The position numbers and the translations under genes are program-made. A stretch of DNA of 64,000 nucleotides from Mobula hypostoma (lineage: Eukaryota): positions 110,050,001 to 110,114,000 of the forward strand of contig NC_086101.1 in NCBI RefSeq assembly GCF_963921235.1, read 5' to 3'. This document shows positions 5,318 through 40,310 of this stretch, piece after piece (within the stretch, counting starts at the first letter, position 1; the number at the start of each line of letters is the position of its first letter). The notes below the pieces were generated by a model. That model was given only the letters and a program-made list of their open reading frames with translations. It did no database searches and was not told the DNA's origin.

Positions 5318-5387
5318 ATGGGCTGCTTTGGAAGGTCACAGGCGGTGCTGGGATCCATTCTCTGGTTACATCTTATGCAAATCAGAG
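5318..5387 (+). CDS. Gene 1 exon 1, signal peptide MGCFGRSQAVLGSILWLHLMQIR(G)
   Basis: ATG at 5318; hydrophobic core; strong donor AG|GTAAGC; phase 1 matches the V-exon acceptor and gives ...QIRG-AMG. Confidence 0.75.
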
Positions 5388-8986: not shown

Positions 8987-9361
8987 GTGCAATGGGGATT
9001 GTCATGGTCCAGCAGACCCCAGCTACCCTCTCTGTGATGGAAGGGAAACCATTCCGTCTCCGCTGCCAGCTCAATACGACAGAGGTCACGCCACTGGAAA
9101 CGGTGATCTTCAAATGGACCATAGGGAACTCCCAGCTCCAATTCACAAAGACCCTGATGAACATCACATACTGGAACAACAGCACAAATCAGAGCAGGGA
9201 GATGCACGTCGAGGAAGAGGAACAGGGCTGGGCAACCAGCCTGGTGGTGGTGAGCGCAAGGAGAGGGGACAGTGGTGAATACCTGTGTGACATCACTGTT
9301 ATCAGGCCGATGTCAATGCAGAACGACTACCATGGCAATGGCACCAGGGTGGAAGTACTCG
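8987..9361 (+). CDS. Gene 1 exon 2, IgV domain of CD28/PD-1/TMIGD2-family type
   Basis: ACACAG| acceptor and |GTAAGG donor, phase 1-1, 375 nt; B-strand Cys (FRLRC), C-strand Trp (FKW), ARRGDSGEYLC, J-like GNGTRVEV. Confidence 0.9.
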
Positions 9362-9440
9362 GTAAGGTCACCAGACCACGGGACAAGCAGGGCACAGGGG
9401 AGAATGAGAGCAAGCTAGGAGATCACTGGGGAATGGGTCA

Positions 9441-9802
9441 TACACACACACACTGACCCTCACTAGGGGATGGTCCCACACACACTGACCCCCACTGGGG
9501 AAAGTCCCACCTACACACACTCACTCTCACTGGGGGACTGGTCACACACACACACACTGACCCTCACTGGACGACTGGTCTCTCTCTCTCTCACACACAC
9601 ACACTGACCCTCACTGGGGGACTGGTCCCCCACACACAGTGACCCTCACAAGAGGACTGGTCCTACACACACTGACCCTTACCAGGGGACAGTCCCACCT
9701 ACACACACTGACCCTCATGAAGAGACTGGTCACACACACACACTGACCCTCACTGGGGGACAGTCCCACCTACACACACTGACTCTCACTGGGGTCAGTC
9801 CC

Positions 9803-9852
<50 letters not shown>

Positions 9853-9880
9853 GACCCTCAGTGAGGGAATAGTTCCCACA
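9441..9880. repeat. Minisatellite of about 30-40 nt (CACACACTGACCCTCACTGGGGGACTGGTC-like) ending in a (CA)n run at about 9806-9849
   Basis: About a dozen degenerate units visible directly. Confidence 0.9.
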
Positions 9881-9982
9881 CGCACATTGTCTCTCACAAG
9901 TTGTTGAGTTTATTCCCTCTGATTTACTCTGACACATCTCACTGTGTTTAAGGTGATTTGAATGCGCTTTGGTTTGTTTCAG

Positions 9983-10084
9983 CTGCAGGGGCACTGCCTT
10001 CCTCCTCGTGGTACCTCTTTCTAATTGGGCTGGTTCCGCTCCTGTTGTTTGCTACCTGGATGTTGGTGAGGAAAGACTGCCAAG
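9983..10084 (+). CDS. Gene 1 exon 3, TM exon (A)AGALPSSSWYLFLIGLVPLLLFATWMLVRKDCQ
   Basis: TGTTTCAG| acceptor and |GTGAGA donor, phase 1-1; 20-residue uncharged helix followed by RK stop-transfer residues. Confidence 0.85.
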
Positions 10085-10173
10085 GTGAGATGGCCTCCCT
10101 ACTCCCACCCTTAACCTTCCCACCATCCCTCACTGGAATCGTTTTCCGTCAACGGAACAGAACAGTGTTTCAG

Positions 10174-10260
10174 TCAAAGAAACACTGCGGATTCAGCAGC
10201 AGTCGCGGGCGGCGGGTCCTGAGCTCCGCCGGGTCCTAAAGTCCACCCGAATTTAGACAG
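10174..10260 (+). CDS. Gene 1 candidate exon 4 (V)KETLRIQQQSRAAGPELRRVLKSTRI*, with TAG at 10254-10256
   Basis: GTGTTTCAG| acceptor after an 89-nt intron; CAG|GTAAAA donor; 87 nt, phase 1-1; GC-rich compared with its flanks. Confidence 0.45.
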
Positions 10261-10271
10261 GTAAAATAGGA

Positions 10272-11564
10272 CAGGGGTCCCCAACCTTTTTCGCACTGCG
10301 GACCGGTTTCATATTGACAATATTCTTACGGACCGGCCGACCGGGAATGAGGGGTGGGGTGGTGGTGGTAGGGTTGCCACGGCCAAGAGTAGCAGTCTAG
10401 TCCTGACGAAGGGTCTCGGCCTGAAACGTCGACTGCACCTCTTCCTAGAGATGCTGCCTGGCCTGCTGCGTTCACCAGCAACTTTTATGTGTGTTGCTTG
10501 AATTTCCAGCATCTGCAGAATTCCTGTTGTTTGCAGTCAAATACGTCCGGTTTCCCCCTAAATAGACTACAATGACCATGAAGCCTTGCGCGGGCACCAG
10601 TGCGCATGCGTGTACGATTTTTTTCTACAAATCGATTTTGGCGATTCTGTTCGGCGCGGCGGCCGGAATATCGGTAATAAGTGGCTAATACACTCAATTT
10701 CCTTTCTGAAAGGGTTTATCGAACGAATTTAATATTAAACACCAGCGCATATTTTCCTCGCATGAATACAGTGATACGTCAATTATCAGGAGAGGACAGG
10801 GGAGCTTTAAGTAAGCATTGAACGAACTTCCAGTAGAAGTGGTAGAGGCAGGTTCGATTTTTTCATTTAAAGAAAAATTGGGCAGCTATATGGACAGGAA
10901 AGGAATGGCGGGTTATGGGCTGAGTGCAGGTCGGTGGGACTAGGTGAGAGTAGCGTTCGTCACGGACTAGAAGGGCAGAGATGGCCTGTTTCCGTGGTGT
11001 AATTGTTATATGGTTATATAAGTCAATAGCATCATAACATTTTAAGTAACGTTTGGATATTAAACACGCAGCACATATTTTCCCCATATGAACATATAAA
11101 ATCATTGCAACACACCAATATCGCTGAATCAGTGCGAGCCCTGGGCTTGTTTTCCTGCAACAGGACGGTCCTATCGAAGGCTGACGGGAGACAGCGATAG
11201 GCGAACGGGGTTCCTTATGTCCAGTCTAGTCCACAATTTAGTTTTCGTTGCATTCATTGCAGAGATAAGTTGGAAATGGAAGGAACGTTTTCAGTGCTTT
11301 CGTGGCTATCTCAGGATTTTTAGCCTTGACTTTGATCCGGAATGCCAGCAGAGATGTTAATGTCAAACATACTTTCCAGCCCGCCGTCATTCACAAGCTC
11401 GAGGAGTTGATCTCCTTCCCGTGCTGACATGGATGACGCGCGGGTAATGACCTCGCGTGCGTAATGGCTCAACAGTGGCCGTGACAGGGAATGAGGAAAG
11501 GTGCAGCTGTCTCATATCGCCAAATCATATCGCTTCCTCGCGGCCCGGTGGTTGCGGACCGCTG
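10272..11564 (-). mobile_element. Non-autonomous hAT (Charlie/Buster-like) DNA transposon
   Basis: TIRs CAGGGGTCCCCAACC and GGTTGCGGACCGCTG; near-perfect 8-bp TSD AAATAGGA/AAAAAGGA; contains a transposase C-terminal remnant. Confidence 0.85.
11129..11412 (-). pseudogene. hAT transposase C-terminal dimerisation-domain remnant (frameshifted)
   Basis: Hand translation gives DQLLELVNDGGL...EIATKALKTFLPFPTYLC...KTKLWTRLDI...AGKQAQGSH*. Confidence 0.75.
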
Positions 11565-11754
11565 AAAAAGGACAAGTGGGGGCGGTGCTGACTGAAAAGG
11601 TGGGGGGGGGGTCAGGGTGAATCTTGCTAAGAACATTTTAAATCAAATACAAAGAAACACACTCAACACAGTGTTAACGGCAACGTAATCCGACTTAAAA
11701 TACCGGACGGCGTTCTCCTTCCTCGAGTTGACGAATTATTAATATAATAGGCTT

Positions 11755-11930
11755 AATGGCAGGCCGTTCGTAAGTACGAGTTGTTTGTATGTCGGACGTT
11801 CGTAACGCGGGGACACCCTGTAATGGAACTTACGAAAGGCCCTGCCCCGATGAAAGCTACAATTATTACTAAGCAACGCAGTCGTTTAATTATTGAAATA
11901 CATACGAGTTACGAATGTCCAACTTAATTA
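11755..11930. mobile_element. Tigger/pogo-like DNA transposon end fragments
   Basis: GGACGTTCGTAACGCGGGGACACCCTGTA resembles a pogo-type terminus ending CTG+TA. Confidence 0.4.
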
Positions 11931-11935
11931 AACCA

Positions 11936-14900
11936 CTGTAGGTTTCAATGAGATCCCCATGAAGTCTTCTAAATCCCAGTGAGTATAGGCCCAACACTTT
12001 CATTCCCAGAATTATCCCCATGAACCTCCTCTGGATTCTTTCCTTTGACAACACACCCTTTCTGAGATATGGGGCTCAAAACTGTTGCCAGTAGTCCAAG
12101 TGCCATCTGACTAGTGTCTTCTTAAGCCTCACCATTATCTCCTTCAAATAAATGCCAACATTGCACTTGCCTTCTTTACCAGAGAATTAACCTTCTGGGT
12201 GTAATGCATGAGGACCCCTAGGTCCGTTTGCACCTCTTTTGTTTGAATTTTCTCCCTATTATTGGATACTCTGCCCTCATATTTAATCTTTTCCCTGATG
12301 ACTTTGACTTATGTTGGATTTTAAAAGCTTCCCAATCATCCAACTTTCCACTCACCTTTGCTAGCTTATATGTCCTTTCCTTGCCTTTTATGCAGTTTTT
12401 AAGTTTTCTTGTCAGCCAAGGTTGACTACCCCTGCCATGTGAGAACGTCTGTGGGACATGTCTCTCCTGCATCTTCCGAATCATTCCCAGAAACTTCAGC
12501 CATCTCCGCTCTGCTTTCAGCCCTGCCAGTATCCTCCCCCAATCCAGCTGGGCAAGCTCCTCTCTCATTCCTCTGTGATTCCCTTTATTCCATTGCGATA
12601 CTGATACATGTGTTATGCTTCTCCCACTGAAATTGAATTCAATCATATTATGATCACTGCCTTCTTAGGGTTCCTTTACGTTAAGCTGCTTAATAAGATC
12701 TGGGTTAATACACAACACCCAATCTAGATAGCCTTTCCCCAATTAAGCTTAAGCACAAGCTGCTCTAAAAAGCCACCTTGTAGGCATTGAACACAAGGGT
12801 GTAGCTATGGGCACTCGCATGGGCCCCAGCTGTGCCTGCCTCTTTGTTGGTTATGTGGAACAGTCTGTGCTCCAAACCTCTGCTGGTACTGCTCCCCAAC
12901 TTTTCCTTCGCTACATTGACGACTACATTGGTGCTGCCTCCTGCACCCATGCTGAGCTCGTCAATTTCATCAACTTTACTTCAAACTTTCACCCAACCCT
13001 CAAATTCACTTGGTCTATCTCAGACACTTCTCTCCCCTTTCTCAATCTCTCGGTCTCCATCTCTGGAGACAGACTGTCCACTGACATCTTTTATAAGCCC
13101 ACTGACTCTCATAACAACCTCGACTATACCTCTTCCCACCCTGCCACATGCAAAAATGCCATTCCCTATTCCCATTTCTTCTGTCTCCACCACATCTGCT
13201 CCCAGGATGAGGCTTTCCATTCCAGGACATCTCAAATGTCCTCTTTCTATAAGGATCGTGGTTTCCCTTCTACCATCATCAACGAAGCCCTCACCCGCAT
13301 CTCCTCCATTTCCCTCACTTCGGCTCTCACCCCATCCTCCCGCCACCACAACAGGGACAGAGTTCCGCTTGTCATCACCTACCACCCCACCAGCCTCCGA
13401 ATCCAGCACATTATCCTTCGCAAGTTCCACCACCTTCAACAGGACCCCACCACTAAGCACATCTTTCCCTCTCCACTCTTCTCCGCTGTCTGCAGGGATC
13501 GGTCCCTCCGCGACTCCCTGGTCCACACGTCCCTCCCCACAGATCTGCCACCTGGCACTTATCCCTGTAAGCGTAAGTGCTACACCTGTCCCTACACCTC
13601 CTTTCTTGCCACCATTCAGGGCCCCAACCAGTCCTTCCACGTGAGGCAACATTTCACTTGTGAGTCTGTTGTGGTCATCTATTGCATTCGGTGCTCCCTT
13701 CTCTACATCGGTGAAACCCGACGCAAATTGGGGGACCGCTTCGTCGAGCACCTCCACTCTGTCTGCCACAACAGACAGGATCTCCCGGTTGCCACCCAAT
13801 TCAACTCTGCTTCACATTCCCATTCGGATATGTCCATACATGGCCTCCTCTACTGCCATGATGAGGCTAAACTCAGGTTGGAGGAGCAACACCTCATATA
13901 CTGTCTAGGTAGTCTTCTGCCTCCTTCTACTACCTATTGTGCTTTCCCCTATTCCTTCTTCACCTTTCCTGCCTATCACCTCTCTGCTTCCCCTCCCCCA
14001 CCCCTTTATCTTTCCCCTTACTAGTTTTTCACCTGGAGCCTTCCAGACTTCTCCTTCCCACCCTCCCGCCACCTTCTTTATAGGGCCTCTGCCCCTTCCC
14101 TCTACAGTCCTGATGAAGGGTTCCGGCCAAAAACGTTGACTGATCGTTTCCACGGATGCTGCCTGACCTGCTGAGTTCCTCCAGCGTGCGGCGAGTGAAC
14201 ACGTTCCCTCTCTTGTGATCCAAACACCATTCTGCTTTTCCCAATCCACTTGCATATTGAAGTCCCCCATTACAATTGTATCATTACGCTCATTACATGC
14301 CTTTTCGCAATCCCTTTGCAATCTCAATCCCACATCCTGGCTACTATTTGGAGGCCTATATATGATTTCCCTAATGCTTTTTATACCCTTGCAATTTCTT
14401 AACTCCACCCACAAGGATTCAACATTCTCTGACCCTATGTCATCTCTTTCTAAAGATGTAAATCCATATCTTTCCAACAGAGCCACAGCACTGCCTATGC
14501 CTTCCTGCCTTTCTATGCCTTTATGCCTTTCGATATAAAGTATATCCCTGGATGTTAAGCTCCCAGCTATGGCCTTCTTTCAGCCACGACTTAGTTATGC
14601 CCACAATGTCAAACTGACCGTTCTCTAATTGTGCCACGAGTTCCTGCACCTTATTCTGAATGCGATGGGCATTTAAATACAACAGCTTCAGTCCTGCATT
14701 CTTCACCCTTTTGAACTTTGCCTCTGTGGTACAATTTAACTCCTCACTCTGTCTGCATTTGTAGTCAATCGTTGGCTTGTCCTTCCTTGCATTCAACTTG
14801 CACCCATCATCTACTTGTAAACCTGCTGGCTCAACCTTAGCTCTATCATCCTGGTGGCCATCATCCTGCCATATTAGTGTAAACTGTTCTCAACAGCTCT

Positions 14901-15874
14901 TGTCAGTCTTGCCAGAATAATTGCCCCCCTTCGATTCAAGTTCAACATATCCCTGTTGTACAGGTCCCACCTGCCCCAGAAGAGGTCCCATTATCCAGAA
15001 ATTTAAACCCCTGCTCCTGCTCGAATTCTTCAGTCATGCTTTTGTCTGCCACCTCATTCTATTCCTATCCTCACTGTCAGTGGCACAGGCAGCAATCCAG
15101 AGATTACTACCCTTGAGTTCCTGCTTCCCAGCTTCCTTCCTAACTCCCTATGTTCTTTTTTTCAGGATCGCCTCACTTTCTCTTCCCATGTTTTTTTGTA
15201 CCAATATGTACCACGACTTCCGGCTGCTCACCCCACAGCCCTTTTCAAGTTACTGTGGGCACGTCCAGAAACATCTCAGACCCTGGCACCTGGGAGGCAA
15301 ATTACAATATGTGTTTCCTTTTCGCGTCCACAGAATCATCTATCTGTCCCCCTGACTATAGAGTCCCTAATTACTGCTGCCAGCCTCTTCAGTTCCTTAC
15401 CCTTCTGACCCACAGGGCCTGACTCAGTGCCAGAGGCACAGCCATGGTTGTTTCCCCCCAGCTAGGTCATTCCCTCCCTCCCTCAACAGTATTCAAAATG
15501 GGGTACTCAAAATGGTGACTACATCCCTGTAGCTTCTGTCTATCACTGCTTCACTTTCCCCAACAAGCTGAAGGTCATTGAGCTGTAGCTCCAGATCCCC
15601 AACACTGTGTCTAAGGAGCTGCATCTCGATGCATCTGCACAGATGTGGGGAGGCAGGGAGTTTCCTGGAAATCCCACATCTGATAGTCAAAACAAGACAC
15701 TGGCTCTGTAGATATACCCCTTGTCTAGAATTGAATAAGGAATGAAGTTACCTCGACTCCACCTGTTCTTGCCAAGCTTTGTTTGGGCCAAAGCCTTCAA
15801 CTCTGACTCACTGCTCCCACGATGACTGCTTGGCTAGGTGGAACCTCTCCTTTATAGAGACTGGGTTTCCCATC
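11936..15874 (-). mobile_element. Degraded CR1 LINE reaching its 5' end (ORF1 zinc-finger/leucine-zipper and esterase remnants; ORF2 endonuclease remnants)
   Basis: Minus ORFs 15493..15690 (HLCRCIEMQLLRHSVGDLELQLNDL), 14521..14796 and 14215-14486 (LYLNA, VELRN, IVMGDFN); paralogous to 36093-39526. Confidence 0.85.
12795..14202 (+). mobile_element. 5'-truncated Penelope-like retroelement (RT C-terminal half plus GIY-YIG endonuclease)
   Basis: ORF 12807..14024 with MGTRMGPSCA, LRYIDD, and IYCIRC..LYIGET..LGDRFVEH; flanking duplication TGAACAC at 12788-12794 and 14196-14202; empty site in units B and C. Confidence 0.92.
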
Positions 15875-15924
15875 GAAAAGCTTTGTCAGACCTGTGCAGG
15901 AACTCTCCTGTCACGTCTGCACAG

Positions 15925-15999
15925 TACTCCAGTCAATCACTCCGCTCTGTGTTCTCTGGGGTGCTGCTCAGCAGCATATTCCCAGCACCACAGAGATGG
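15925..15999 (+). other. Candidate 75-nt phase 1-1 cassette exon (V)LQSITPLCVLWGAAQQHIPSTTEM; copies at 39577-39651 and 60205-60279
   Basis: Pyrimidine-rich CTCTCCTGTCACGTCTGCACAG acceptor; weak G|GTACAG donor; no stop codon; identical in all three units. Confidence 0.3.
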
Positions 16000-16034
16000 G
16001 TACAGACCATTGCTCACCACGTCCGTCTGCTCAT

Positions 16035-16558
16035 CAGCACTCGGTGCACAGTATTGTGCCTGAGGCTTTTGCACAGTGCTGTAGTAATTTAATGAATTAT
16101 ACTCTACTGTGCCAAAAAATAAAACACATCATGATATAAGTGAGTGATGATATGCCTGATTCTACTATGGGTTTCTAATGTGGACCAAGAGTGAGAAGGG
16201 GGCAGGGAGATGGGAATTATTGTTGGGAAAAGGGGAAGGCAGAGGGGAAAGAGCTGGAAGCAGCAGAGAGACATTCCACAATGATCAATAAAGCAATTGT
16301 CTGGAATCGGACTGGACCTTGCCTGGTGTCTCAGGGCTGGGTGTGTCTACACCAGTGCTACCCCAGCACTCCTTCTCTGCCACCTATACTATGTCCCTCC
16401 TACAACACTCCACTCTCAATATTCCATACATCCTTCGCTGCCCATAGATTTACAAACTCCCACTCTGCTCCATGATGACAAACACAGCACTATGCAAAAG
16501 TCTCAGGCGCCCTCGCTGCAGTGCATGTATGAGCCTAAGAATTTTTCACAGTACTATT
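16035..16558. mobile_element. Partial copy of the 2981-3707 MITE family (also at about 39687-40210 and 60315-60838)
   Basis: Shares GCACAGTGCTGTAGTAATTT, the purine-rich arm and the TIR-like GCAAAAGTCTCAGGC. Confidence 0.7.
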
Positions 16559-16656
16559 CTGCTGTCACCTGGTTGGATAAGCAGATGTCCTGACTACCAG
16601 TCGCACCATCTCTGCCAGTTGAGTTCACAATTAAGAATCTATCTGCCTGTTTCCAG

Positions 16657-16709
16657 ATGCCAACACTCGGAGAGTGAACAAGGAGACAGTCCAGGAGACC
16701 CAGCTCTGA
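16657..16709 (+). CDS. Terminal exon copy in unit A, (D)ANTRRVNKETVQETQL*; orphan, or used by gene 1
   Basis: CTGCCTGTTTCCAG| acceptor; phase-1 frame open to TGA in all three copies; AATAAA at 16923. Confidence 0.5.
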
Positions 16710-16922
16710 GAATGAATTCTCCCAGACAGTGTCGGGTCAGACGGTGTAACCCTGGTCGTCTGGGCACCGGGTGAAATGGAGATCACTCAACAATGCCACA
16801 TGAGATCACGTCACAGTGACAGAGGTGGAAGCGGAAGGGCCAGAGCCAATCTTAGAATCCAAGTGATCCTATCTCTTCCAAAAATGTATGGTTTACGTGC
16901 AACGTCTTATTATTATCCGTGT

Positions 16923-16928
16923 AATAAA
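16923..16928 (+). terminator. Putative polyadenylation signal AATAAA
   Basis: About 215 nt after the stop codon; conserved at 61202-61207. Confidence 0.5.
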
Positions 16929-17059
16929 AACCCCAGAACTATGTGAGATATTTTCATAGCTTGAATGACCAATACTGTTTAATGGTGTTGGCATTTATTT
17001 TGAACTGTTTCCTCTTTAGTTTTGCGGAAGAATATATTAGTAGTGCAATGCCATAAACA

Positions 17060-18123
17060 CAGGACGTTGAAAGTTGCTGGAAATCCAGAAGAACACGCAC
17101 AGAATGTTGGAGGAGCTCTGCAGATCAAAATGCATCAATCGAAATGAATACATGGTTACAATTTCAGGCTGAAACACTTCTTCTGCACTGGGGAGGAAGG
17201 GGATGTGGCCAGAATAAAAAGGTGGGGGATGGGAAAGAGAACTAGTTGGAAGGTGATAGTTGAGGTCAGGAGGGTGCGGAACTTATAGGGCTGGAGAACA
17301 AGGAATCTGATGCAGGAGAGGAGTGCGGACCATGAGGGATAGTGAAGAAGGGGTGCACCAGAGGGAGTTGATTGGACTACTTAGGAGAAGGGGTAAGAGG
17401 CCAGAGTGAGGAATAGAGGGAAAATATTGGAAGGAGGAATCGATGTTCATGCCGCTAGTTTGGAGTATACCTCTCACCACCTGGTCTCATGTAAAAGTGC
17501 AATTCCCTTTCCTCAGTTCCTTCGTCTATACCATCTGCACTTCATCCACCACACTGTTCCCAGGATGAGGATTTCCCTTGCAGGACACCAGAGATGTCTT
17601 CTTTCTCAAACTGGGTTTGAGTTGATGTTTCCAACACCCACATCTCCTCGATTTCCCATATGTCCACACTTACACCATCTTCCAGTAGTTTTAGCTTGGA
17701 TAGCGTTCCACATGTCCTCAATTATCACCACATTTGCCTCCACATCCAACACAAAGTTCACCATCTTCAATGGCATCCCGCCGCCATACAGATCTTTATC
17801 TCCTCACCCTCACCGTCCACGCTTCGCAGGGCTCGCTCCTTCCATAAATTCCTGTTTATTCCACCATCCCTATTACTCTCGCTCCTGCCCTTCTGGCTCA
17901 TACCCTGCAAGTGAAAGAAAAGCTGTATTTGCCAATTCAACTTCCTGTCCAGCATCGAGTCAGGGCCCCAAGTAGTCCTTATAGTTCAGGCCTCACTTTA
18001 CCTGCAAATCTGCTGGGCTATTCTATTCAATGCAACCTCACCAAATCGTGGTGAGACTGGAGGTGAATTTGCTGGCCACTGTCACCAGCAACTCCACTCC
18101 ATCTGTGGTTAACCATTTTAATT
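17060..18123. mobile_element. Penelope-like remnants (3' tail on the minus strand, then RT/GIY-YIG remnants on the plus strand)
   Basis: Homologous to parts of 13100-14180; paralogues at about 40730-41787 and 61350-62400. Confidence 0.6.
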
Positions 18124-21100
18124 AGAACATAGAATAGTACAGCACAGTACAGGCCCTTCGGCCCACATTGTTGCACCAACCCTCAAACCCTGCCTCCCAT
18201 ATAACCCCCTGCCTTAAATTCCTCCATATACCTGTCTGGTAGTCTCTTAAATTTCACTAGTGTATCTGCCTCCACCACTGACTCAGGCAGTTTATTCCAC
18301 GCACCAACCACTCTCTGAGTGAAAAACCTTCCTGTAATATCCCCCTTGAACTTCCCATCCCTTACCTTAAAGCCATGTCCTCTTTTATTGAGCAGTGGTG
18401 CCCTGGGGAAGAGGTGCTGGCTATCCACTCTATCTATTCCTTTTATTATCTTGTACACCTCTATCATGTCTCCTCTCATCCTCCTTCTCTCCAAAGAGTG
18501 AAGCCCTTGCTCCCTTAATCTCTGATCATAATGCATACTCTCTAAACAAGGCAGCATCCTGGTAAGTCTCCTCTGTATCCTTTCCAATGCTTCCACATCC
18601 TTCCTATAGTGAGGCGACCAGAACTGGACACAGTACTCCAAGTGTGGTCTAACCGGAGTTTTATAGAGCTGCATCATTTCCTCACAACTCTTAAACTCTA
18701 TCCCTCGACTTATGAAAGCTAACACCCCATAAGCTTTCTTAACTACCCTATCTACCTGTGAGGCAATTTTCAGCGATGTGTGGATGTGTACCCCCAGATC
18801 CCTCTGCTCCTCCACACTACCAAGTATCCTGCCATTTACTTTGTACTCTGCCTTGGAGTTTGTCCTTCCAAAGTGTACCACCTCACACTTCTCTGGGTTG
18901 AACTCCATCTGCCACTTCTCAGCCCACTTCTGCAACCTATCAATGTCTCTCTGCAATCTTTGACAATCCTCTACTCTATCTACAACACCACCAACCTTTG
19001 TGTCATCTGCAAATTTGCCAACCCACCCTTCTACCCCAATATCCAGGTCGTTAATAACAATCACGAAAAGTAGAGGTCGCAGAACTGATCCTTGTGGGAC
19101 ACCACTAGTCACAACCCTCCAATCCGAATGTACTCCCTCCACCATGACCCTCTGCCTTCTGCAGGCAAGCCAATTCTGAATCCACCTGGCCAAACTTCCC
19201 TGGATGCCTTCTGACTTTCTGAATAAGCATGCCTTCTGAATATCCATGCATAACTTTCTGAATAACCATGCCTTCTGAATTTCTGAATAAGCCTACCATG
19301 TGGAACCTTGTCAAATGCCTTACTAAGATCCACATAGATCACATCCACTGCACTACCCTCATCTATATGCCTAGTCACTTCCTCAAAAAAATCTTTCAGG
19401 CTCGTTAGACATGATCTGCCCTTCACAAAGCCATGCTGACTGTCTCTGATCAGAACATGATTCTCTAAATACCTGTAGATCTTATCTCTAAGAATCTTTT
19501 CCAACAGCTTTCCCACCACAGACATAAGGCTCACTGGTCTATAATTACTCGGACTATCCCTACTACCTTTTTTGAACAAGGGGACTACATTCGCCTCCCT
19601 CCTATCCTCCGGTACCATTCCTGTGGACAACGAGGACATAAAGATGCCAGCCAGAGGCTCAGCAATCTCTTCCCTCGCCTCATGGAGCAGCCTGGGGAAT
19701 ATTCCGTCAGGCCTCGGGGACTTATCTGTCCTAATGTATTTTAATAACTTCAACACCTCCTCTCCCTTAATATCAGCATGCTCCAGAACATCAGCCTCAC
19801 TCATATTGTCCTCACCTTCATCAAGTTCCCTCTCATTGGTGAATACTGAAGAGAAGTACTCATTGAGGACCTCGCTCACTTCCACAGGCTCCAGGCACAT
19901 CTTCCCACCTTTATCTCTAATCGGTCCTACCTTCACTCCTGTCGTCCTTTTGTTCTTCACAAAATTGAAGAATGTCTTGGGGTTCTCCTTTACCCTACTC
20001 ATCAAGGCCTTTTCATGCCCCTTTCTTGCTCTTCTCAGCCCCTTCTCAAGCTGCTTTCTTGCTACCCTATATTCCTCAATAGACCATCTGATCCTTGCTT
20101 CCTAAACCTCATGTATTCTGCCTTCTTCCATCTGACTAGATTTTCCACCTCATTTGTCACCCCTGGTTCCTTCACCCTACCGTTCTTTATCTTCCTCACC
20201 AGGACAAATTTATCCCTAACATCCTGCAGGAGATCCCTGGAGGAGAAGATGGCGGCGCAACGCAGCGTGCAGCCTCTCCGGTGAAATGATATTGCATTTG
20301 TTAAATAGAGGGCTGTACACAATCTTCATTTGATGGAGACGGACATGAGAAGCACGGAGGAACATCTGGAGAAACTTCTGAGATGCCCGGTTCTCTGCCG
20401 CTGCCACTGTGCAATTGAGAATCTCTGGAGAGAAGGCCCCAAATCCTCGATTTTGCCTGTTGCTGGCGGCCAGGGCTGGGGTCAAAGCACTCAGCAGAGA
20501 TGGTGCTCGGTGCTCAGTGTTGGAGGGCTGGTCGGTGGCTCGAAGTTTTCAGACGGATTGAGAGTCGGACTGTGGTCGGGTGCTTCCAGGATGCTGTATC
20601 GTCAAGTTTGCAGCGCTGGAAGCTCATGGCAGGGGAAGTTTTCTTCCTTCTACCATCTGCGTGAGATATTGGGAGTTTTGAGAGACTTTGAGACTTTTTT
20701 TTACCGTGCCCATGGTCTCTTCTATTAAATTATGGTATTGCTTGCACTGTTGTAACTATATGTTATAATTATGTGGTTTTTGTCAGTTTTTCAGTCTTGG
20801 TCTGTCTTGTGTTTCTGTGCTATCACACTGGAGGAAAATTGTATCATTTCTTAATGACAATAAAAGAGGACTGCGTGTCCTCAAAATCTAATCTAATCAT
20901 CGACCACATGTCCATAGTACATTTCCCTGCAAAAACATCATCCCAATTCACACCCGCAAGTTCTAGCCTTACAGCCTCATAATTTGCCCTTCCCCAATTA
21001 AAAAATTTCCTGTCCTCTCTGATTCTATCCTTCTCCATGATAATGCTATAGGCCAGGGAGTGGTGGTCACTGTCCCCCGGATGCTCACCCACTGAGGGAT

Positions 21101-29950: not shown

Positions 29951-30466
29951 TTATACCTGTGTTGCCTGATTCCCCATTGGTGGTCATAGGCTCGGAGTGT
30001 GAAAGGTAAAGGTAAAATTTGTTATCGATGTAGGCAAATGCCACGATATTTCAGAATCATTTTCTTGCAGATATTTCAGGAAAATAATGTAATACAATAG
30101 AATCTGCACATAAGCAAAGACTGGCAACCAATGCGCAAAGGAAGTCAAATTCTGCAAACAATATTTATACTGACAACTAGATTTGTAAAGAGATCTTGAA
30201 GTGAGCGTGCAGGTGGGAGAGTGAGTTCACAGATTCAGTGTGTGAAGTTCTCCACGCCGGGTCAGGGTGCTGGTGGTTGGTAATGCGGGTCTGTTGCAAT
30301 TTGGATTTAACGGGTTTGAGAGGAGAAAGAATTGTTCTGGAGTTCGGTCTGTCAATCAGAGGGCAGGGACTTGCCTGGCGCTGAGAGAATTACGGGCTGA
30401 TTATCCGCCGGGTGAGATGTGGGTGGAGGTTCCCAAATGACCATTTGCTCCCTCCCTCTCCCTCAG

Positions 30467-30823
30467 CATGGAGCAGCGGAAGTGGCTTCCGGGTGGAGCA
30501 GCCGAAATACATCGAGGCTGTAGTGAACGAGCCCGTCACTCTCACCTGCACCTTTACCCACCCGGAAATCTCCTCACTCCGAGACATTGACATCAGATGG
30601 AGAGTTCGCAATTACTACACGGCAGATATATTCAGATATCTAGATAACTACACGCTCAAAGATTTCAGAGGCCGGATCAAGTTCCTGGGTTCGCCATTTA
30701 GAGACAAGACGGGCTCCATCCGCTTACTCCGGGTCAGAGAAGAGGACAGCAACATGTACTTCTGCAGTGTGGTGATCTTGGGGGAAGAGTACACAGGTCC
30801 TGGGACCGTCCTGTCGGTTCAAG
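30467..30823 (+). CDS. Gene A exon 2, IgV domain D1 (PILR/NKp30-like, J-like GPGT)
   Basis: CCCTCAG| acceptor and |GTGAGA donor; 357 nt, phase 1-1; VEQPKYIEA, LTC, RW, FRGRI, DSNMYFC, GPGTVLSV. Confidence 0.92.
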
Positions 30824-31888
30824 GTGAGAACCCCTTCCTCTGTCTCAGAGTTGTTGCGGCTGGAGGTGTTGTCTGGGGTTGGGGTGTTGCAGGTGAGGGA
30901 ACAACGAGTGGTAAATGGAGGAAGCTACGGGTTTACGGAGTTTACATGTCTCTGTGCCGAATAAGGAATTAGACAGGCAGACGAAGCAGATGAAACTGCG
31001 GGAGTCTCACAGACACACACAGGCACGAACACACACATAGCGATTCCTGACAGTCCGTGATGAGAGGGGAGTCGGGTCGAGCATAATGTAATTATGTTGG
31101 ATAACAGACCCCCGGGATTCAACTACTGAAGTGGATGTAACTTCGGCGCTCCGTGGGTTTATATATCGATTAAGTGATACATAGCTGTGAGATGCAGGCG
31201 GGGATCTAATCCAGGGGTTCGGGTGTTTCTATGCAAGAGACCCCAGAGAGTTAGTAGTGAGTGGAATCTTATCCAGGGGTTCATTGAATTTATGTTGTGA
31301 AATACAGATTCCCAGATGTGAGTTAGACGCTGTGATCTCTGTAAACAATTTGGGAGTTTAATATAGAGAATAGCAACTAACCATGGGTTCGATGCGGACT
31401 AGAATCTAATCTAATATGGTGTTCAAATTGTTTACCTAGCGATACACAGATTCCCGTCAGTTGCAGACTGGACTGGAATCGCGGGTTCAGGGGGTTTATA
31501 TTCAGAAATATATGTCCAGAGGGAGTTACAGGCTGGGATCTATTGTTGGATCTTCCGGATTATATATCGAATAACAAATTCATATCTATGGGTTACACGT
31601 TGTGATCTAATGCAAGAGTTTAAACGGTATTTGTTGAGAATGGCAGGTCCACGGAAGTGAGTTTGATGCTGACATGTAATCTAGGGGCTCAGGGTTCGAT
31701 GCCTGATTTGCCTAATCACCAGTTGGTGGTCACAGGCTTGGAGAATGGACGATTTAGTCTGGATTGGTCTAGTTTATGAATCAGAGCGCAGGGACTAATC
31801 TGTTGCTGAGACTATTATGGGATGGTTTTCTGCCGGATGAAATGTGATAGGAGGTTCCCGAATGATCGTTTGCTCCCTTTTCCCTCAG

Positions 31889-32263
31889 CACGGACCGGTA
31901 GCCGTGAGCGCTGGGTGAAGCAGCTGGGGTACCAGGAGGCTGCAGAGAATGGGTCCGTCATTCTCCCCTGTTCCTTCACTTACCCGGACACTTATACACC
32001 CAGAGACATTCATATCACTTGGAGAGTGGGTGGCTTTCATGGTACAGAGATATTCGATTCTTCACGAAACAACGCACTCGGGGAATACCGAGGCCGGATC
32101 GAGTTCCTGGGCTCCCCATTGCGAAACAAGACGGGCTCCATCCGCTTACATCGGCTGAATGGAAATGACTCCAATTTCTATTTCTGTGGTGTGACAATTT
32201 TGGAAGATCATGGTCAGCTGGTTGGATGGCAAAGCAGCTCAGGAACGTTTCTGTCAGTGAGAG
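31889..32263 (+). CDS. Gene A exon 3, IgV domain D2 (PILR-like)
   Basis: CCCTCAG| acceptor and |GTGAGT donor; 375 nt, phase 1-1; GSVILPCSFTYP, ITWRVGGFHG, YFCGV, WQSSSGT. Confidence 0.92.
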
Positions 32264-32999
32264 GTGAGTCCTGAATCCTTACCCTGACCTCTGCTCTTGT
32301 CTGAAGATTCTTTCAAATAATCCCTGTGCATCAACCCAGCTTCATGTCTTCACATTCTCATCCTGCAGAAGGTCAGACCACTCAGTCCATCACATCCATA
32401 CTGACCGATTGACTACCATCCGCATCAAGCTCACCTCCGGGGGTTCGTCCCTCACCTGTCCCCAGATAGTTCAGGTATTGGTGTAGATAATTCCGAAAGG
32501 ATATCAGTGACTGCTCCGCCCCTCCCTCTCTGGCAGTGGGTTCCAAATACTCACCGCTCTCTGTGTGAAACTTCCTTCTCAGACCCCCTCGATATCCCTT
32601 ATCCTTCACCTAGATGTTTTACCAAATATTACGTTTAGTCCACCCTGTCAATACACTCATGTGTATGTACAACTCAGTCATATTCCTGGACGACCACGTC
32701 CATTGCAGGGAATACAGACCTAGTCTCTCCTTATTACTGAAGCACTCTGTCCCAGATGATATCCTGTGGACATTCTTCACACTTTCTGTAGTGAGAACAC
32801 CCCCTCCACTCTCTTCCTCAGTATTCCATGTCCAGGTCTCATTAATCTTCAGAATGACTTTTAGCTCAAACTTCTCTGGAATAAATAACCTGGGTGATAT
32901 CTCAGCTCATTTCACCAACACAATGAGTTTTAGTATTGACAAGTTTACCCTCCACACTGTCCATAATATCATTGATTTTGCAGAGTAGAACATAGAACA

Positions 33000-33660
33000 T
33001 TACAGCACAGTACAGACCCTTCAATTCATAAGTTGTGTCGGCATTTTGTCCTATTCTAAAATCAATTTAACCCAGCCCTCCTACATAGTTCTCCATTTTT
33101 CTATCATCCTATCACCCTATCTATGAGTTTGTCAAATGTCTCTAACGTATGTGGCTCTACCGCCACCACTGACAGGCTGTTTCATGCACCCACAACGGTC
33201 TGTGTAAATACAAACTTACCTATAAAATCCACCCCCCCCCATACCTCCCTCCAGTCACTTTACAAGTACACCACCTTTGATTCAGGATTGCACCCCTGGG
33301 AATGTCACTGTCTGCCCACTGAATACAGGTCTCTTATCATCTTGTGACTTTCTATTAAGTCACCTCTCATCCTGCACTGCTCCAAAGAGAAAAGCATGAG
33401 CTCGCTCAACCTCTCTTCATTGGAAAGGCTCTCTCGTACAGGTACCATCCCTCTAAATCTCCTCTGTGCCCTTTCTAATGCCTCCACATCCTTCCAGTAC
33501 TGAGGTAACCGGAACTGAATGTGATATTCCGAATGTGATCTAATCAAGAACTTATAGTGTGGCAACATAATTCCACGGCTCTTGAACTCTTTCCCCTTCA
33601 CCTTTGACGGCCTACCAACCATATGCTTTCTTAACCACCCTATCGACCTGTACAGCACTT
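33000..33660 (-). mobile_element. CR1 3' remnant (paralogue at about 53764-54310)
   Basis: Minus ORF 33305..33658 (YWKDVEALERAQRRF, LFSLEQCRMRGDLIE). Confidence 0.8.
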
Positions 33661-34312
33661 TTAATGAATCTGCTCTTCTCTGTGAACTTACTGATCAGCG
33701 AGCAACGTCCATGATGAATGATCTAATCAACTGCTTAATATCATTTTCAGGCAGCTGCCACGGGGAGGGAGGTATAGAGGAGTGAAGTCCCACACCACCA
33801 GGTTCAAGAATAGCTGTATCCCTTCAGACATCTGCTTCTTGAGATATCCAACACAAAACTAACCATTACTTTAACAGACCAACTCTATGTCAATTTGGAC
33901 TATAATGGACCTTGATTTTTCTTCTTCTAATCACATTTGGCCTTATAAAATTCATGTCCCCTCTCTCCAAGACCTGGGATGCTTCCTAAGGTTTGACACA
34001 TTGATTTCATTCCAGTCTGTCAGTCCCCTTCTCCTCAGGGTGTGGAACACCCTTGTGCTTGGGACATTGTGTCTGTGCTGAATCACAATCACAACTCTCC
34101 AGAGTTGGAAACACCTCAGGATTATTCAGATTCCGCCCCCACCCCCAGTACCCCTGACTCTCCCCTCTCCTGTAGCATTGGGTCACAATCTCCAAACTTG
34201 ATCCCATGTGTTACCCCTGTCCTTCACAACCGGTTGCTCTCTCCACCCTCTCCTCCTGTGTCTCAGTCACTGCTCTGGATCACAACTCACAGGAGGTTCA
34301 TTGACCCCACAG

Positions 34313-34447
34313 TGACCACAGTAACTCAGGAGATGCAGAACCTGAGCCACGGCTCCATCCTGATGATCCGGGCAGTGCTGGTTCTAGTACCGCTGGCAAT
34401 GGCGTGCACCACGGGCATTTACCTGACCAAGAGGAGCCCAGTTACAG
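34313..34447 (+). CDS. Gene A exon 4, stalk plus TM (V)TTVTQEMQNLSHGSILMIRAVLVLVPLAMACTTGIYLTKRSPVT
   Basis: TTGACCCCACAG| acceptor and CAG|GTAAC donor; 135 nt, phase 1-1; Arg codon at 34369-34371 inside the helix. Confidence 0.85.
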
Positions 34448-35739
34448 GTAACCTGCATTCTCTGTCCTTGCTGATCCCTGTCCGACGGAATGAATCACAT
34501 GAGCTTCCCGTTTGACTTGGTGTACTGTTTATGTACCGTCCACAGTCAAACACAATCTGGGGCTCTGAATGATGGTTCCAGACTTTGTAACACCCCATCC
34601 TCCTCCACTGAAAACTCTACCACGGTGATTCTCAGCATGCCGAGCCCATCCATCCCTCTCAGGTCCCCTTCGGAAAACAGGAGCAGGATTAGGCTACTCG
34701 GCCCCTCAAATAAGCCTCAGCTTTTAGTGAAACTTCAGCAGATGTACCCCAGGCCTCATCTCACTTTCCCTGCCATTTGCAAGGAGCCTCAATATCGAAG
34801 TGTTGGAAAGTCCAACCCCTTCCGATCTGAAATGCTCCAGAAGATTTTGCAAAGAATTCCAGAGATGCACCAACTTTTGCAGCAGTTTTAAATTACCACC
34901 TCCTCCCAGGGACATGAAGGGAGTGGAGATATCTTTATGTAGCCAGGTTAGTTAACTGTGCCATTACTAGTTTTATTGGATCAGTACAAAATCATGGGCC
35001 GAAGGGCCTTTTCCTGTGAAATCCTGCTCTTTACTCAGTGGCCACTCTACTTCGTGCAAAAGTGGAACCCAGTGTTGTCTCCACGTTCAATTTCACATTA
35101 ATCATCACATATCCATACAGGTGTATATAGTTAAACAAATTACCATTTGAAACAGCTCGTCCTGCCCATCCACTTCAAGATTAGGTGTGTTGTGCATTCA
35201 GTGATGCTCTTCTGCACTCCACTGTTGGAATGTGTCCACATTTCATTCACTGTCACCTTGAACCAGACTGCTCATTCTCCTCTCATCCCTCACATTAACC
35301 AGGTGCTTCCACCCACAGAACATCTACTCACAATTTGACATGTATTATTCACACTATTCTCTGTAAAGCCTAGAGACTGTTGTGCATGTAATTCACAGGA
35401 GATCAACTGTTTCAGAGATACTCAGTCTAATGTCCAAGTAAGTTCAATCACATTTCTTCCCCATTCAGAGATTTGGTTTGAACATCTGAACCTCGACCAT
35501 AGAACATAGAACATACAATAGTACAGCACAGTCCAGGCCCTTCTGCCCACAATGTTGTGCCGACCCTCAAACACTGCCTCCCATATAACCCCCTACCTTA
35601 AATTCCTCCATACACCTCCATATAATTACATGGTTTTTTTGCATTGAGTTTGTGCCATATATCTGGTTGATTAAACATTTGCATTAGCCAGCAGGTGCAC
35701 AGCTACAGCTAATATGATAGCTGCTAAGTGTCCATAAGA

Positions 35740-38700
35740 CCATAAAACACAGGAGCAGAATGAGGCTTTTCAGCCCATAGATTCTGCTCTGCTATTCCAT
35801 CATGGCTGATCCCGGATCCCACCAACCCACCCACCTTCTTGCCATATACTTTGATGCTCTGACTGATTAGGAAATGATCGCCTTCTGCCTGAAATATGCC
35901 CACAGACTTGACCTCTCCTTCAGTCTGTGGCAGAGCATTCCATAGATTTACTACTCTCAGCTAAAAAAATTCCTCCTTACCTCTTTTCTAAAGGGTCGAC
36001 CCTCAGTTTTGAGGTTGTGCCCTCTAGTTCTGGATACAGGCACCATAGGAAACATCCTCTCCATATGCGCCCTGTCTAGTCCTTGGAACATTCTGTAGGT
36101 TTCAATGAGATCCCTATGAATTCTTCTAAATCGCAGCGAGTATCGTCCCAAAGCTGCCAAACGCTCCTCATATGTTAACCCCTTCATTTCCACAATTATC
36201 CCCATGAACCTCCTCTGGATTCTTACCATTGACAACACATCCTTTCTGAGATATGGAGCCCAAAACTGTTGACAGTAGTCCAAGTGCGGCCTGACTAGTG
36301 CCTTCTAAAGCCTCACCATTATCTGCTTGAAATAAATGCCAACATTGCACTTGCCTTCTTACCCAGAGAATTAACCTTCTGGGTGTCCTGCATGAGGACT
36401 CCAAGGTCCATTTGCACCTCTGTTGCTTGAATTTTCTCTCTATTTAAAGAATAGAACGCACTATTGTTCCTTTTACTAAAAAGCACTAGCATACATTTCC
36501 CAACATTGTATTTCATCTGCCACTTTTTTTGCTCACTGTTCCAATTTGTCTATGTCCTGCTGCAATTACATTGCTTCCTCAGCACTACCCATTTCTCCAG
36601 CTATCTTTGTATCATCTGCAAACTGTGCCACAAAGCCATCAATTCCATTATCTAAATCATTCACAAATAATTTGAAAAGTATCGGTCCCAAAACTGACCC
36701 TTGAGGAGCACCATGTGTCTCTGGCAGCCAAGCAGAAAAGGCCTTTTTTGTCCGGTTGCTGCCTCCTGCCTGTCAGCCATTCCTCTATCCATGTCAGTAC
36801 TTCCTCAAAGCACACTAATAGATTAGTAATGTACTCCAACACTTTCCCAACCACTAAGGTTTGGCTAACTGCCCTATCATTTCCTCTCTTTTGTCATCCT
36901 CCCTTCTTAAAGAATGTAGAGACATTTGCAATTTTCCAGTCTTCCAGGACCATGCAGAAATCAAGTTGATTCTTGAAAGATCACGACCAATGCATCCACT
37001 CTCAGTACTCTGGAATGTCGTCCATCTGGCCCAGGTGACTTGCCCACCTTAACACCTTTGAGTTTTCTTAGCACTTTTTCCTTTGCAATAGCAATAGCAC
37101 TCACTCCTGCTGTCTGACAGTCACGGACTTCCGGCACTCTGCTAGTATCTTCCACAGTGAAAACTGATGCAGAGTACCCATTTAGTTCATTTGCCATTTC
37201 TTTGTCCCCCGTTGCTACCTCACCAGCATCATCTTTGAGTGGTCCAATATCAATGCTAACCTCCCTTTCAGTCTTTATATAACTGAAAAAACTTTTGGTA
37301 TCCTGCTTTATATGATTTGATACTCTGCCCTCATATTTAATCTTTTCCCTTCTTATAGCTTTGACTTTTGTTGAATTTTAAAAGCTTCCCAATTGCCCAA
37401 ATTTCCACTCACTTCTGCAAGCTTGTATGTCCTTTCTTTGGCTTTTATGCTGTTTTTAAGTTTCTTCGTCAGCCAAGGTTGACTACCCCTGCCATGTGAG
37501 AACGTCTGCGGGATATAACTATCCTGCGCCTTCTGAAATATTCCCAGAAACTTCCGCCATCTCCGCTCTGCTGTGTGCCCCGCCAGTATCCTCCCCCAAT
37601 TCAGCTGGGCAATCTCCTCTCTCATTCCTCTGTGATTCCCATTATTCCATTGCGATACTGGTACATGTGTTATGCTTCTCCCAGTGAAACTGAATTCAAA
37701 AATATTATGATCACTGCCTCCTTAGATTCTTTTACGTTAAGCTGCTTAATAACATCTGGGTTAATACACAACACCCAATTTAAGATAGCCTTTCACCGAG
37801 TAAGCTCAAGGATAAGCTGCTCTAAAAAGCCACCTCGTAGGCATTGAACACATTCCCTATCTTGTGATCCAAACACCATTCTGATTTTTCCAATCCACTT
37901 GCAGATTGAAGTCCCCCATTACAATTGTATCATTATGCTTATTACATGCCTTTTCCCACTCCCTTTGCAATCTCAACCCCACATCCTGGCCATTATTTGG
38001 AGGCCTATATATGATTGCCATAATGGTTTTTATACCCTTGCGATTTCTTAACTCCACCCACAAGGATTCAACATTCTCTGACCCTATGTCATCTCTTTCT
38101 AAAGATGTAAATCTATATCTTCCCAACAGAGCCACACCACTGCCTATGCCTTCCTGCCTTTCTATGCCTTTATGCCTTTCGATATAAAGTATATCCCTGG
38201 ATGTTAAGCTCCCAGCTATGGCCTTCTTTCAGCCACGACTTAGTTATGTCCACAATGTCAAACTGACCATTCTCAATTGTGCCACGAGTTCCTGCACCTT
38301 ATTCTGAATGCGATGGGCATTTAAATACAACAGCTTCAGTCCTGCATTCTTCACCCTTTTGAACTTTGCCTCTGGGTACAATTTAACTCCTCGCTCTGTC
38401 TGCGTTTGTAGTCAATCATTGGCTTGTCCTTCCTTACATTTAACTTACACCCATCATCTACTTGTAAACCTGCTGGCTCAACCTCAGCTCTATCATCCTG
38501 GTGGCCATCATCCTGCCATATTAGTGTAAACTGCTCTCAACAGCTCTTGTCAGTCTTGCCAGAATAATTGCCCCCCTTCGATTCAAGTTCAACATGTCCC
38601 TGTTGTACAGGTCCCACCTGCCCCAGAAGAGGTCCCCATTGTCCAGAAATCTAAACCCCTGCTCCTGCTCGAATTCAATCCTGTATTTGTCTGCCACCTC

Positions 38701-39526
38701 ATTCTATTCCTATCCTCACTGTCGGTGGCACAGGTAGCAATCCAGAGATTACTACCCTTGAGCTCCTGCTTCCCAGCTTCCTTCCTAACTTTTATCAGAA
38801 TATCCTCGCTTTCTCTTCCCATGTTGTCTGTACCAATATGTACCACTACTTCTGGCTGCTCACCCCACAACCCTTTTCATGTTATTGTGGGCACATCCAG
38901 AAACATCTCAGACCCTGGCACCTGGGAGGAAAATTACTACTGTATCTGTGTTTCCTTTTTGCGTCCACGGAATCATCTATCTGTCCCCCTGACTATAGAG
39001 TCCCTTGTTACTGCTGCCAGCCTCTTCAGTTCCCTACCCTTCTGAGTCACAGGGCCCAACTCAGTGCCAGAGGCACGGCCGTGGTTGTTTCCCCCCAGCT
39101 AGGTCATTCCCTCCCTCCCCCAACAGTATTCAAAATGGGGTACTCAAAGTGGTGACTACATCCCTGTAGCTTCTGTGTTTCACTGCTTCACTTTCCCCAA
39201 CAAGCCGAAGGTTATTGAGCTGTAGCTCCAGATCCCCAACACTGTGTCTAAGGAGCTGCATCTCGATGCACCTGCGCAGATGTGGCCATTGGGAAGACAG
39301 GGAGTCTCCTGGAAATACCACATCTGATTATGAGAACAGTACACCGGCTCTGTAGATGTACATCCTCTCTAGAATTGAATAAGGAATAAGGAATGAAGTT
39401 ACCTTGACTCCACCTGTTCTTGCCTAAGCTTTGTTTGGGCCAAAGCCTTCAACTCTGACTCACTGCTCCCACGATGACTGCTTGGCTAGGTGGAACCTCT
39501 CCTTTATAGAGACTGGGTTTCCCATC
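35740..39526 (-). mobile_element. Degraded, near-full-span CR1 LINE in the last intron of gene A
   Basis: Minus ORFs with RT remnants, endonuclease remnants (37857..38135), ORF1 esterase (PEVVVHIGTD, 38589..38870) and zinc-finger remnants (39130..39321). Confidence 0.85.
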
Positions 39527-40310
39527 GAAAAGCTTTGTCAGACCTGTGCAGGAACTCTCCTGTCACGTCTGCACAGTACTCCAGTCAATCACTCCGCTCT
39601 GTGTTCTCTGGGGTGCTGCTCAGCAGCATATTCCCAGCACCACAGAGATGGGTACAGACCATTGCTCACCACGTCCGTCTGCTCATCAGCACTCGGTGCA
39701 CAATATTGTGCCTGAGGCTTTTGCACAGTGCTGTAGTAATTTAATGAATTATACTCTACTGTGCCAAAAAATAAAACACATTTCCTGATATAAGTGAGTG
39801 ATGATATGCCTGATTCTACTATGGGTTTCTAATGTGGACCAAGAGTGAGAAGGTGGCAGGGAGAGGGGAATTATTGTTGGGAAAAGGGGAACGCAGAGGG
39901 GAAAGAGCTGGAAGCAGCAGAGAGACATTCCACAATGACCAATAAAGCAATTGTCTGGAATCAGACTGGACCTTGCCTGGTGTCTCAGGGCTGGGTGTGT
40001 CTGCACCAGTGCTACCCCAGCACTCCTTCTCTGCCACCTATACTATGTCCCTCCTACAACGCTCCACTCTCAATATTCCATACATCCTTCGCTGCCCGTA
40101 GATTTACAAACTCCCACTCTGCTCCATGTTGACAAACACAGTACTATGCAAAAGTCTCAGGCGCCCTCGCTGCAGTGCATGTATGAGCCTAAGAATTTTT
40201 CACAGTACTATTCTGCTGTCACCTGCTTGGATAAGCAGATGTCCTGACTACCAGTCGCACCATCTCTGCCGATTGAGTTCACAATTAAGAATCCATCCGC
40301 CTGTTTCCAG

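Follow-up and report, generated by a model that had tools for sequence, protein, structure and literature searches.

A probable remnant of a PILR-beta-like tandem unit, with its tail exon, downstream of a single-V receptor gene in Mobula hypostoma

A single-V receptor gene lies upstream of a tandem array of V-set receptor genes

The window analysed is a stretch of 64,000 nt of the Mobula hypostoma genome (RefSeq assembly GCF_963921235.1, contig NC_086101.1, positions 110,050,001–110,114,000 of the forward strand; coordinates below are counted from its first nucleotide). It contains the leader, V-set and transmembrane (TM) exons of a receptor gene, referred to as gene 1, and a tandem array that repeats with a period of about 20.6–24 kb and includes two further V-set receptor genes, A and B. 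Scanning with HMMER using the V exon of gene 1 recovered a 100% identical protein and, together with cluster look-ups, identified the gene as LOC134346253 of M. hypostoma. Its leader, V and TM exons are all phase 1. Gene A is LOC134346254; the RefSeq name of its isoform X2 is ‘paired immunoglobulin-like type 2 receptor beta’ (PILR-beta). Genes A and B both code for a Pfam V-set ectodomain of the PILR/Siglec-like kind, an Arg in the TM exon and a short tail. When counted from the point at which similarity to the first unit begins, self-comparison placed the units of the array at 11936–36092, 36093–56746 and 56747 onwards; the first of them is hereafter named copy 1 (Table 1).

The exon coding for the tail occurs three times (16657–16709, 40311–40363 and 60939–60991). 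These copies differ from one another by 1–3 bases, have their acceptor context and stop codon in common, and read (D)ANT[R/Q]RV[N/K]KETVQETQL followed by the stop. The initial annotation of this locus had described the copy at 16657 as a third tail exon complete with its AATAAA; it is indeed intact, with the signal at 16923. It had further stated that no D1, D2 or Arg-containing TM exon precedes this copy, and that the different V and TM exons of gene 1 are found there instead. Both statements held. When the gene A protein as annotated and its relatives from Hypanus were searched against the window by tblastn, no D1, D2 or TM exons were detected upstream of 16657, such exons being present only in units A and B (at about 30466–34452 and 51343–55105), while the V and TM exons of gene 1 were located at 8987–9361 and 9983–10084.

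A chimeric splice of gene 1 to position 16657, also proposed in the initial annotation, is contained in a RefSeq mRNA model. Isoform X4 of gene 1 (208 aa, XP_062903655.1, P0070) consists of an RNF167-like first exon, the V and TM exons and a terminal part reading ...VRKDCQDANTRRVNKETVQETQL. It joins the TM donor at 10084 to the tail exon of copy 1, and the junction reads ...VRKDCQ/DANTRRVNKETVQETQL. In tblastn searches the last 17 residues of X4 were 100% identical to the translation of 16656–16706 and 94% identical to those of the A and B copies. The model therefore unites exons of two unrelated parental lineages, and this splice form is already public in RefSeq as an uncharacterized protein. 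The tail acceptor (a stretch of pyrimidines, then cag) is matched in phase to the gene 1 donor (CAAG/gtgaga), and both sites are strong. Translation of the leader, V and TM exons joined to 16657–16709 gave a 199-aa protein ending in ETQL, the same product that had been predicted earlier by skipping a putative ‘exon 4’. The suggestion that the donors at 10084 and 10260 are both phase 1 and compatible with the tail acceptor stood in part: 10084 is a phase 1 donor, but the phase-compatible ‘exon 4’ leading to 10260 has an in-frame TAG before the donor. Since an in-frame stop was present in every phase-compatible version of ‘exon 4’, which does not appear in isoforms X2, X3 or X4, this exon was discarded.

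Of the isoforms retrieved, X2 and X3 do not use the tail exon. Isoform X3 (233 aa) has the leader, V and TM exons, reads through the TM donor and stops at 10239. Isoform X2 (242 aa) ends in the same way but starts with an exon whose product is identical to a portion of RNF167-like proteins; it is the longest gene 1 product on record, from a gene spanning 53.5 kb. The RNF167-like first exon of X2 and X4 gave no tblastn match within the window and, judging from the gene span, lies upstream, about 43 kb before the window start. Both isoforms look like conjoined read-through transcripts and lack the signal peptide of gene 1. No tyrosine motif was found in isoforms X2, X3 or X4. The V domain of gene 1 matched PD-1 and the V-alpha domain of the T-cell receptor weakly (E about 0.004). 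The M. birostris orthologue, 94% identical and spanning 42.9 kb, is annotated as a 416-aa fusion of the gene 1 V and TM exons with another V-set gene (XP_072115573.1, P0002). Within the V–TM intron of gene 1 (9423–9900) a unit of about 190 bases is repeated in tandem, and a (CA)n run comes after it.

Table 1. Features of the window discussed in the text (UTR, untranslated region; TE, transposable element; TIR, terminal inverted repeat)
Feature	Coordinates	Strand	Remarks
Gene 1 leader exon	5318–5387	+	Phase 1 donor; from tblastn of gene 1 protein P0001 and translation check
Gene 1 V-set exon	8987–9361	+	Pfam V-set, E 7.7e-9; 100% identical to P0001
Gene 1 TM exon	9983–10084	+	Helix uncharged; donor CAAG/gtgaga, phase 1
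Gene 1 read-through extension	10085–10239	+	In RefSeq X2 and X3 (P0001, P0069); stop codon 10237–10239
Filler	10240–11935		No homology to A/B; TE-like, with TIR-like palindrome 11879–11938 at its end
Truncated homologue of 3′ part of A/B last intron	11936–16656	+	Now 3′ part of gene 1 terminal intron
Insertion in copy 1 only	12796–14195	+	405-aa open frame at 12807–14024
Tail exon, copy 1	16657–16709	+	(D)ANTRRVNKETVQETQL + stop; terminal coding exon of RefSeq X4
3′-UTR, copy 1	16710–16928	+	Intact AATAAA at 16923–16928
Gene A Arg-TM exon	34313–34447	+	Phase 1 donor
Tail exon, unit A	40311–40363	+	Polyadenylation signal AAAAAA, not AATAAA
Gene A alternative terminal coding exon	43836–43846	+	G-D-P-stop; used in both RefSeq isoforms; in repeat
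Tail exon, unit B	60939–60991	+	AATAAA retained

Copy 1 is cut within a LINE

In self-BLAST comparisons copy 1 matched units A and B from position 11936 (equivalent to 36093 in A and 56747 in B) with 82–94% identity, the values being 82–83% over the first 325 bases and 88–94% beyond. The match continued unbroken through the tail exon into the next unit (14196–19228 against 37845–42898, 93.6% identity). The matching segment begins 1.85 kb downstream of the gene 1 TM exon. About 0.87 kb common to A and B (36445–37310 in A) is missing from copy 1, which has a 1.4-kb insertion of its own (12796–14195). The 405-aa frame in this insertion matched no Pfam family; it contains a GIY-YIG-like motif and is presumably Penelope-like, a label to which Pfam gave no support.

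The point at which the similarity starts lies in a long interspersed nuclear element (LINE) on the minus strand, in which Pfam recognized endonuclease remnants (13905–14796) and, in copies of the same family, a reverse transcriptase domain; the C-terminal open reading frames (ORFs) of the element matched no Pfam family. In a six-way alignment, units A and B and three independent LINE copies stayed collinear to the left of the breakpoint, and copy 1 alone switched, at 11936–11938, to an unrelated TIR-like palindrome. The initial annotation had placed an abrupt start of homology at about 11936 inside a CR1 element. The position is borne out, to within 11936–11938, as is its lying in a LINE. We take the element to be of the CR1/L2 type from its C-terminal motif and from the repeat census of the mobulid genome preprint, Pfam having made no assignment. 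DNA-transposon fragments had also been reported just before this point. TIR-like palindromes do abut the breakpoint, but no transposase ORF accompanies them. Recombination between two transposons was considered as the origin of the breakpoint and rejected, the 20-base arm of the terminal palindrome occurring only once in the window.

The portion of the LINE lost from copy 1 is its 3′ end. Because LINEs insert by target-primed reverse transcription, an inserted copy always includes its 3′ end; copy 1 was thus cut after the LINE had inserted. In units A and B the LINE runs continuously through the equivalent of 11936, which indicates that this point is not a duplication junction.

The tail exon belongs to the PILR-beta-like genes

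A gene of the A/B type is present in a ray of another family, Hypanus sabinus. The product of LOC132396364 (P0075, 320 aa) is encoded by D1, D2 and Arg-TM exons followed by the tail DATSRGLKKETFQETQL (...KKETFQETQL), and a partner bearing an immunoreceptor tyrosine-based inhibitory motif (ITIM; P0080) lies 8 kb downstream. In this outgroup, therefore, the ETQL exon acquired by gene 1 is found where it natively belongs, in a gene of the donor lineage. Judged by sequence comparison, the finding of this tail in the A/B-type gene of another ray family demonstrates that the ETQL tail originates in the PILR-beta-like lineage.

Gene 1’s relatives end differently. They were found in Heptranchias, Scyliorhinus, Chiloscyllium, Heterodontus and the caecilian Microcaecilia, and in alignments they had the V domain and the end of the TM exon (C-Q/R-G) in common with gene 1; the V-set of gene 1 matched that of relatives P0005, P0013, P0020 and P0041 with E values of 3e-22 to 1e-7. 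Their tails contain an xIYSSL motif (ITIM-like) followed by a TxYxTV motif resembling an immunoreceptor tyrosine-based switch motif (ITSM), and no ETQL end was seen among the shark and caecilian sequences aligned. At the Heptranchias locus the TM exon has the same end point as that of gene 1 and is followed by two further exons. When five relatives were used as queries for the corresponding ITIM/ITSM exons in the window, nothing below E = 0.7 was found outside the V and TM exons.

The cut in the LINE, the stingray gene and the relatives of gene 1 are three independent lines of evidence, and they agree in indicating that the original tail exons of gene 1 were lost and that it acquired the tail of its neighbour. 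At the level of sequence this resolves the direction of transfer, with gene 1 as the putative recipient and copy 1 as a truncated PILR-beta-like unit. Two scenarios had been offered in the initial annotation. The first, a fusion of gene 1 with the 3′ end of an A/B-type copy, is the favoured one, given the Hypanus tail, the ends of the relatives and the confinement of the LINE cut to copy 1. The second, in which the tail was gene 1’s own and was captured by A and B, is discussed below.

RNA evidence for gene 1 and for the 3′ end of copy 1

Evidence on RNA came from word shares in sequencing runs (the RNA-like runs X1, X2 and X15) and from the RefSeq models. In the segment 8987–10084 exons account for 0.39 of the words, and the share of the segment’s words present was 0.31 in run X1 and 0.27 in run X2, as would fit spliced RNA and not DNA. 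For the copy 1 tail exon and UTR the share present was 0.81 in X15 and 0.65 in X1, and only 0.16 of these words are shared by A or B. The presence of words specific to copy 1 in runs X15 and X1 indicates that its 3′ end is transcribed. Run X1 includes both gene 1 exon words and copy 1 tail words. With respect to isoform X4, to our knowledge Gnomon builds alternative isoforms from transcript evidence only. The RefSeq annotation of M. hypostoma was made with Gnomon and used RNA-seq from the same species (mobulid genome preprint). Transcripts covering the tail region may also come from another source.

Proposed origin of the chimeric gene and alternatives to it

These observations make it probable that copy 1 is the remnant of a PILR-beta-like unit, and that gene 1 is either spliced to its tail or read through at the TM donor. 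Copy 1 (11936–about 19200) would have lost the leader, the D1, D2 and Arg-TM exons and about the first 1.6 kb of the last intron of a tandem unit, and would have kept the remainder of this intron together with the ETQL tail exon, 3′-UTR and polyadenylation signal. Gene 1 is a single-V receptor, and the two cytoplasmic ITIM/ITSM exons of its shark relatives are missing from the window. The most economical account would be one deletion that took the 3′ exons of gene 1 along with the 5′ half of the unit. Since the gene 1 donor and the native TM donors of A and B are both phase 1, the gene 1 pre-mRNA could either be spliced from 10084 to 16657 or be read through, giving two competing 3′ ends. The spliced product would have a cytoplasmic part of 22 residues with ETQL, a motif of the class I PDZ-binding type, at its C-terminus, while the read-through product would have a tail encoded by the intron and ending at 10239. 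E-T-Q-L followed by the stop fits the class I PDZ pattern X-[S/T]-X-hydrophobic in all three copies and in Hypanus. We infer that the leader-bearing mRNA uses the ETQL tail; on the strength of this motif, the tail would be expected to bind PDZ proteins.

Several points weigh against this account. The sole RefSeq model joined to the tail, X4, begins in the RNF167-like exon and has no signal peptide, while X3, the model bearing the leader, reads through the TM donor. In M. birostris the model continues from the TM exon into another gene downstream. Run X2 is listed for the gene 1 exons and not for the tail, and run X15 for the tail and not for gene 1, which argues against a tight coupling of the two. 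The orthology between gene 1 and the shark genes rests on 29–43% identity. Finally, the tail exon is too short, and too likely to have been homogenised by gene conversion, to show selection. A more far-reaching version holds that a PD-1-like ITIM/ITSM receptor of the checkpoint type was rewired in devil rays when one deletion took away its inhibitory tail and gave it a PILR-beta-like ETQL tail, that the leader-bearing 199-aa protein is made and is localised or signals through PDZ scaffolds, and that gene A is abandoning the tail, with its polyadenylation signal gone and a terminal exon derived from a repeat in use; this we consider unlikely.

A possible, if rather doubtful, alternative is that the tail exon is an orphan remnant and that the 10084–16657 join is low-level splicing noise arising mainly in read-through from RNF167, the real product being X3 or gene 1 being on its way to becoming a pseudogene. 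The reading through of the donor in both X2 and X3 and the absence of the leader from X4 would agree with this, as would the RNA-like run shares of the gene 1 exons and of the tail, which do not track each other; the loss of the ITIM/ITSM exons also fits decay. However, the gene 1 donor and the tail acceptor are strong and matched in phase, gene 1 has an intact V exon with 94% conservation in the protein of M. birostris, and the UTR specific to copy 1 is well represented in the RNA-like runs. In addition, copy 1 has kept its reading frame and its AATAAA, whereas unit A has lost the signal.

Far less probable is the second scenario of the initial annotation, in which the tail was originally the last exon of gene 1 and the D1-D2-TM genes captured it during tandem duplication. 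Formally, the array is seamless when counted from 11936, as a tandem duplication from that point would make it. Yet in A and B the position equivalent to 11936 falls within a single unbroken LINE, collinear with the independent copies, the A/B-type gene of Hypanus already has the tail and stands next to its inhibitory partner, and no relative of gene 1 has an ETQL end. It is similarly improbable that a PILR-like unit was split by the insertion or inversion of a segment with RNF167 and gene 1 on it, so that its 5′ half would now lie far upstream: this demands a far larger rearrangement than a local deletion, and leaves the loss of gene 1’s own tail exons unexplained. An assembly misjoin at 11936 is the least probable of all. 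The breakpoint does lie in repeat-rich sequence, but nothing points directly to a misjoin; the window contains no N, the assembly is based on long reads with a contig N50 of 23 Mb (mobulid genome preprint), and a RefSeq intron crosses 11936 and links gene 1 to the tail specific to copy 1.

Comparison with known receptor systems

The array resembles the PILR-alpha/PILR-beta pair: genes A and B have a PILR/Siglec-like V-set, a basic TM residue and a short tail, and in Hypanus an ITIM-bearing partner adjoins. They differ from that pair in having two V domains rather than one. The TM residue of mammalian PILR-beta is Lys, while that of genes A and B is Arg, and we know of no ...QETQL C-terminus in mammalian PILR-beta. 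Tail swapping has been documented mostly in the mammalian KIR, Ly49 and LILR clusters, in which inhibitory receptors have given rise to activating forms when 3′ exons were exchanged or lost. The remnant reading of copy 1 would make gene 1 a comparable case, in which the V and TM exons are kept and the tail is changed by unequal recombination or deletion within a tandem cluster. Here, however, donor and recipient belong to unrelated V-set families, and the tail gained is of the PDZ type, with neither an ITIM nor a charged TM residue. The shark relatives of gene 1 have an ITIM-like and then an ITSM-like tyrosine motif, the order found in PD-1; gene 1 itself has no tyrosine motif, and its likeness to PD-1 consists of a weak V-domain match. 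As in conjoined or read-through genes, X2 and X4 start in an upstream RNF167-like exon that is spliced into the V exon of gene 1. This 5′ fusion is a separate event from the capture of the 3′ tail, which rests on a genomic rearrangement.

The C-terminal ETQL of the E6 protein of human papillomavirus type 16 (HPV-16) binds PDZ domains of Scribble (PMC9987997). The last four residues of E6 are identical to those of the ray tail, and the motif is all that is common to them, one being a receptor tail and the other a viral oncoprotein.

No papers were found on PILR in sharks or rays or on the gene 1 chimera, and the mobulid genome preprint does not deal with immune receptors. As a tail swap in an immune receptor cluster the event is of a known kind, with a breakpoint and a polarity that are unusually clear; it provides a clean instance of tail swapping from a cartilaginous fish, and no new kind of system. 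It would illustrate how a tandem array of immune receptors can supply an unrelated receptor next to it with a terminal exon that is ready for use, and how an inhibitory-type receptor can shed its tyrosine motifs in one step. The conserved PDZ-type C-terminus of the ray PILR-beta-like receptors is a testable feature.

Genes A and B and exchange among the units

The initial annotation had gene 1 sitting upstream of the same terminal exon as genes A and B. This is true of the A/B-type orthologue of Hypanus, but not of gene A as annotated in RefSeq, which ends at 43836. The product of gene A is 306 aa long, and neither RefSeq isoform ends in the gene’s own ETQL exon: both terminate in G-D-P-stop at 43836, 3.5 kb beyond that exon and inside a repeat. 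In unit A the counterpart (40560–40600) of the copy 1 segment 16915–16945 has AAAAAA where copy 1 and unit B have AATAAA, the polyadenylation signal having been lost. Gene A may have switched to the exon at 43836 because AAAAAA replaces AATAAA after its ETQL exon. The homologue of the 43836 exon in the first unit (20230) has TGG at the position of the stop TAG, and its frame would stay open for a further 34 codons. Gene B (50008 onwards) has a RefSeq product of 509 aa that runs downstream past the locus, and the model probably continues into the next unit.

Identity among the units is a mosaic. In a comparison of 15457–17928 with A and B, the intron 200–1200 bases upstream of the tail exon was 95–98% identical in all pairs, and the 3′-UTRs only 83–87%; 400–1000 bases downstream, copy 1 and A were 98% identical. 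This pattern is suggestive of gene conversion, or of unequal exchange, between the units.

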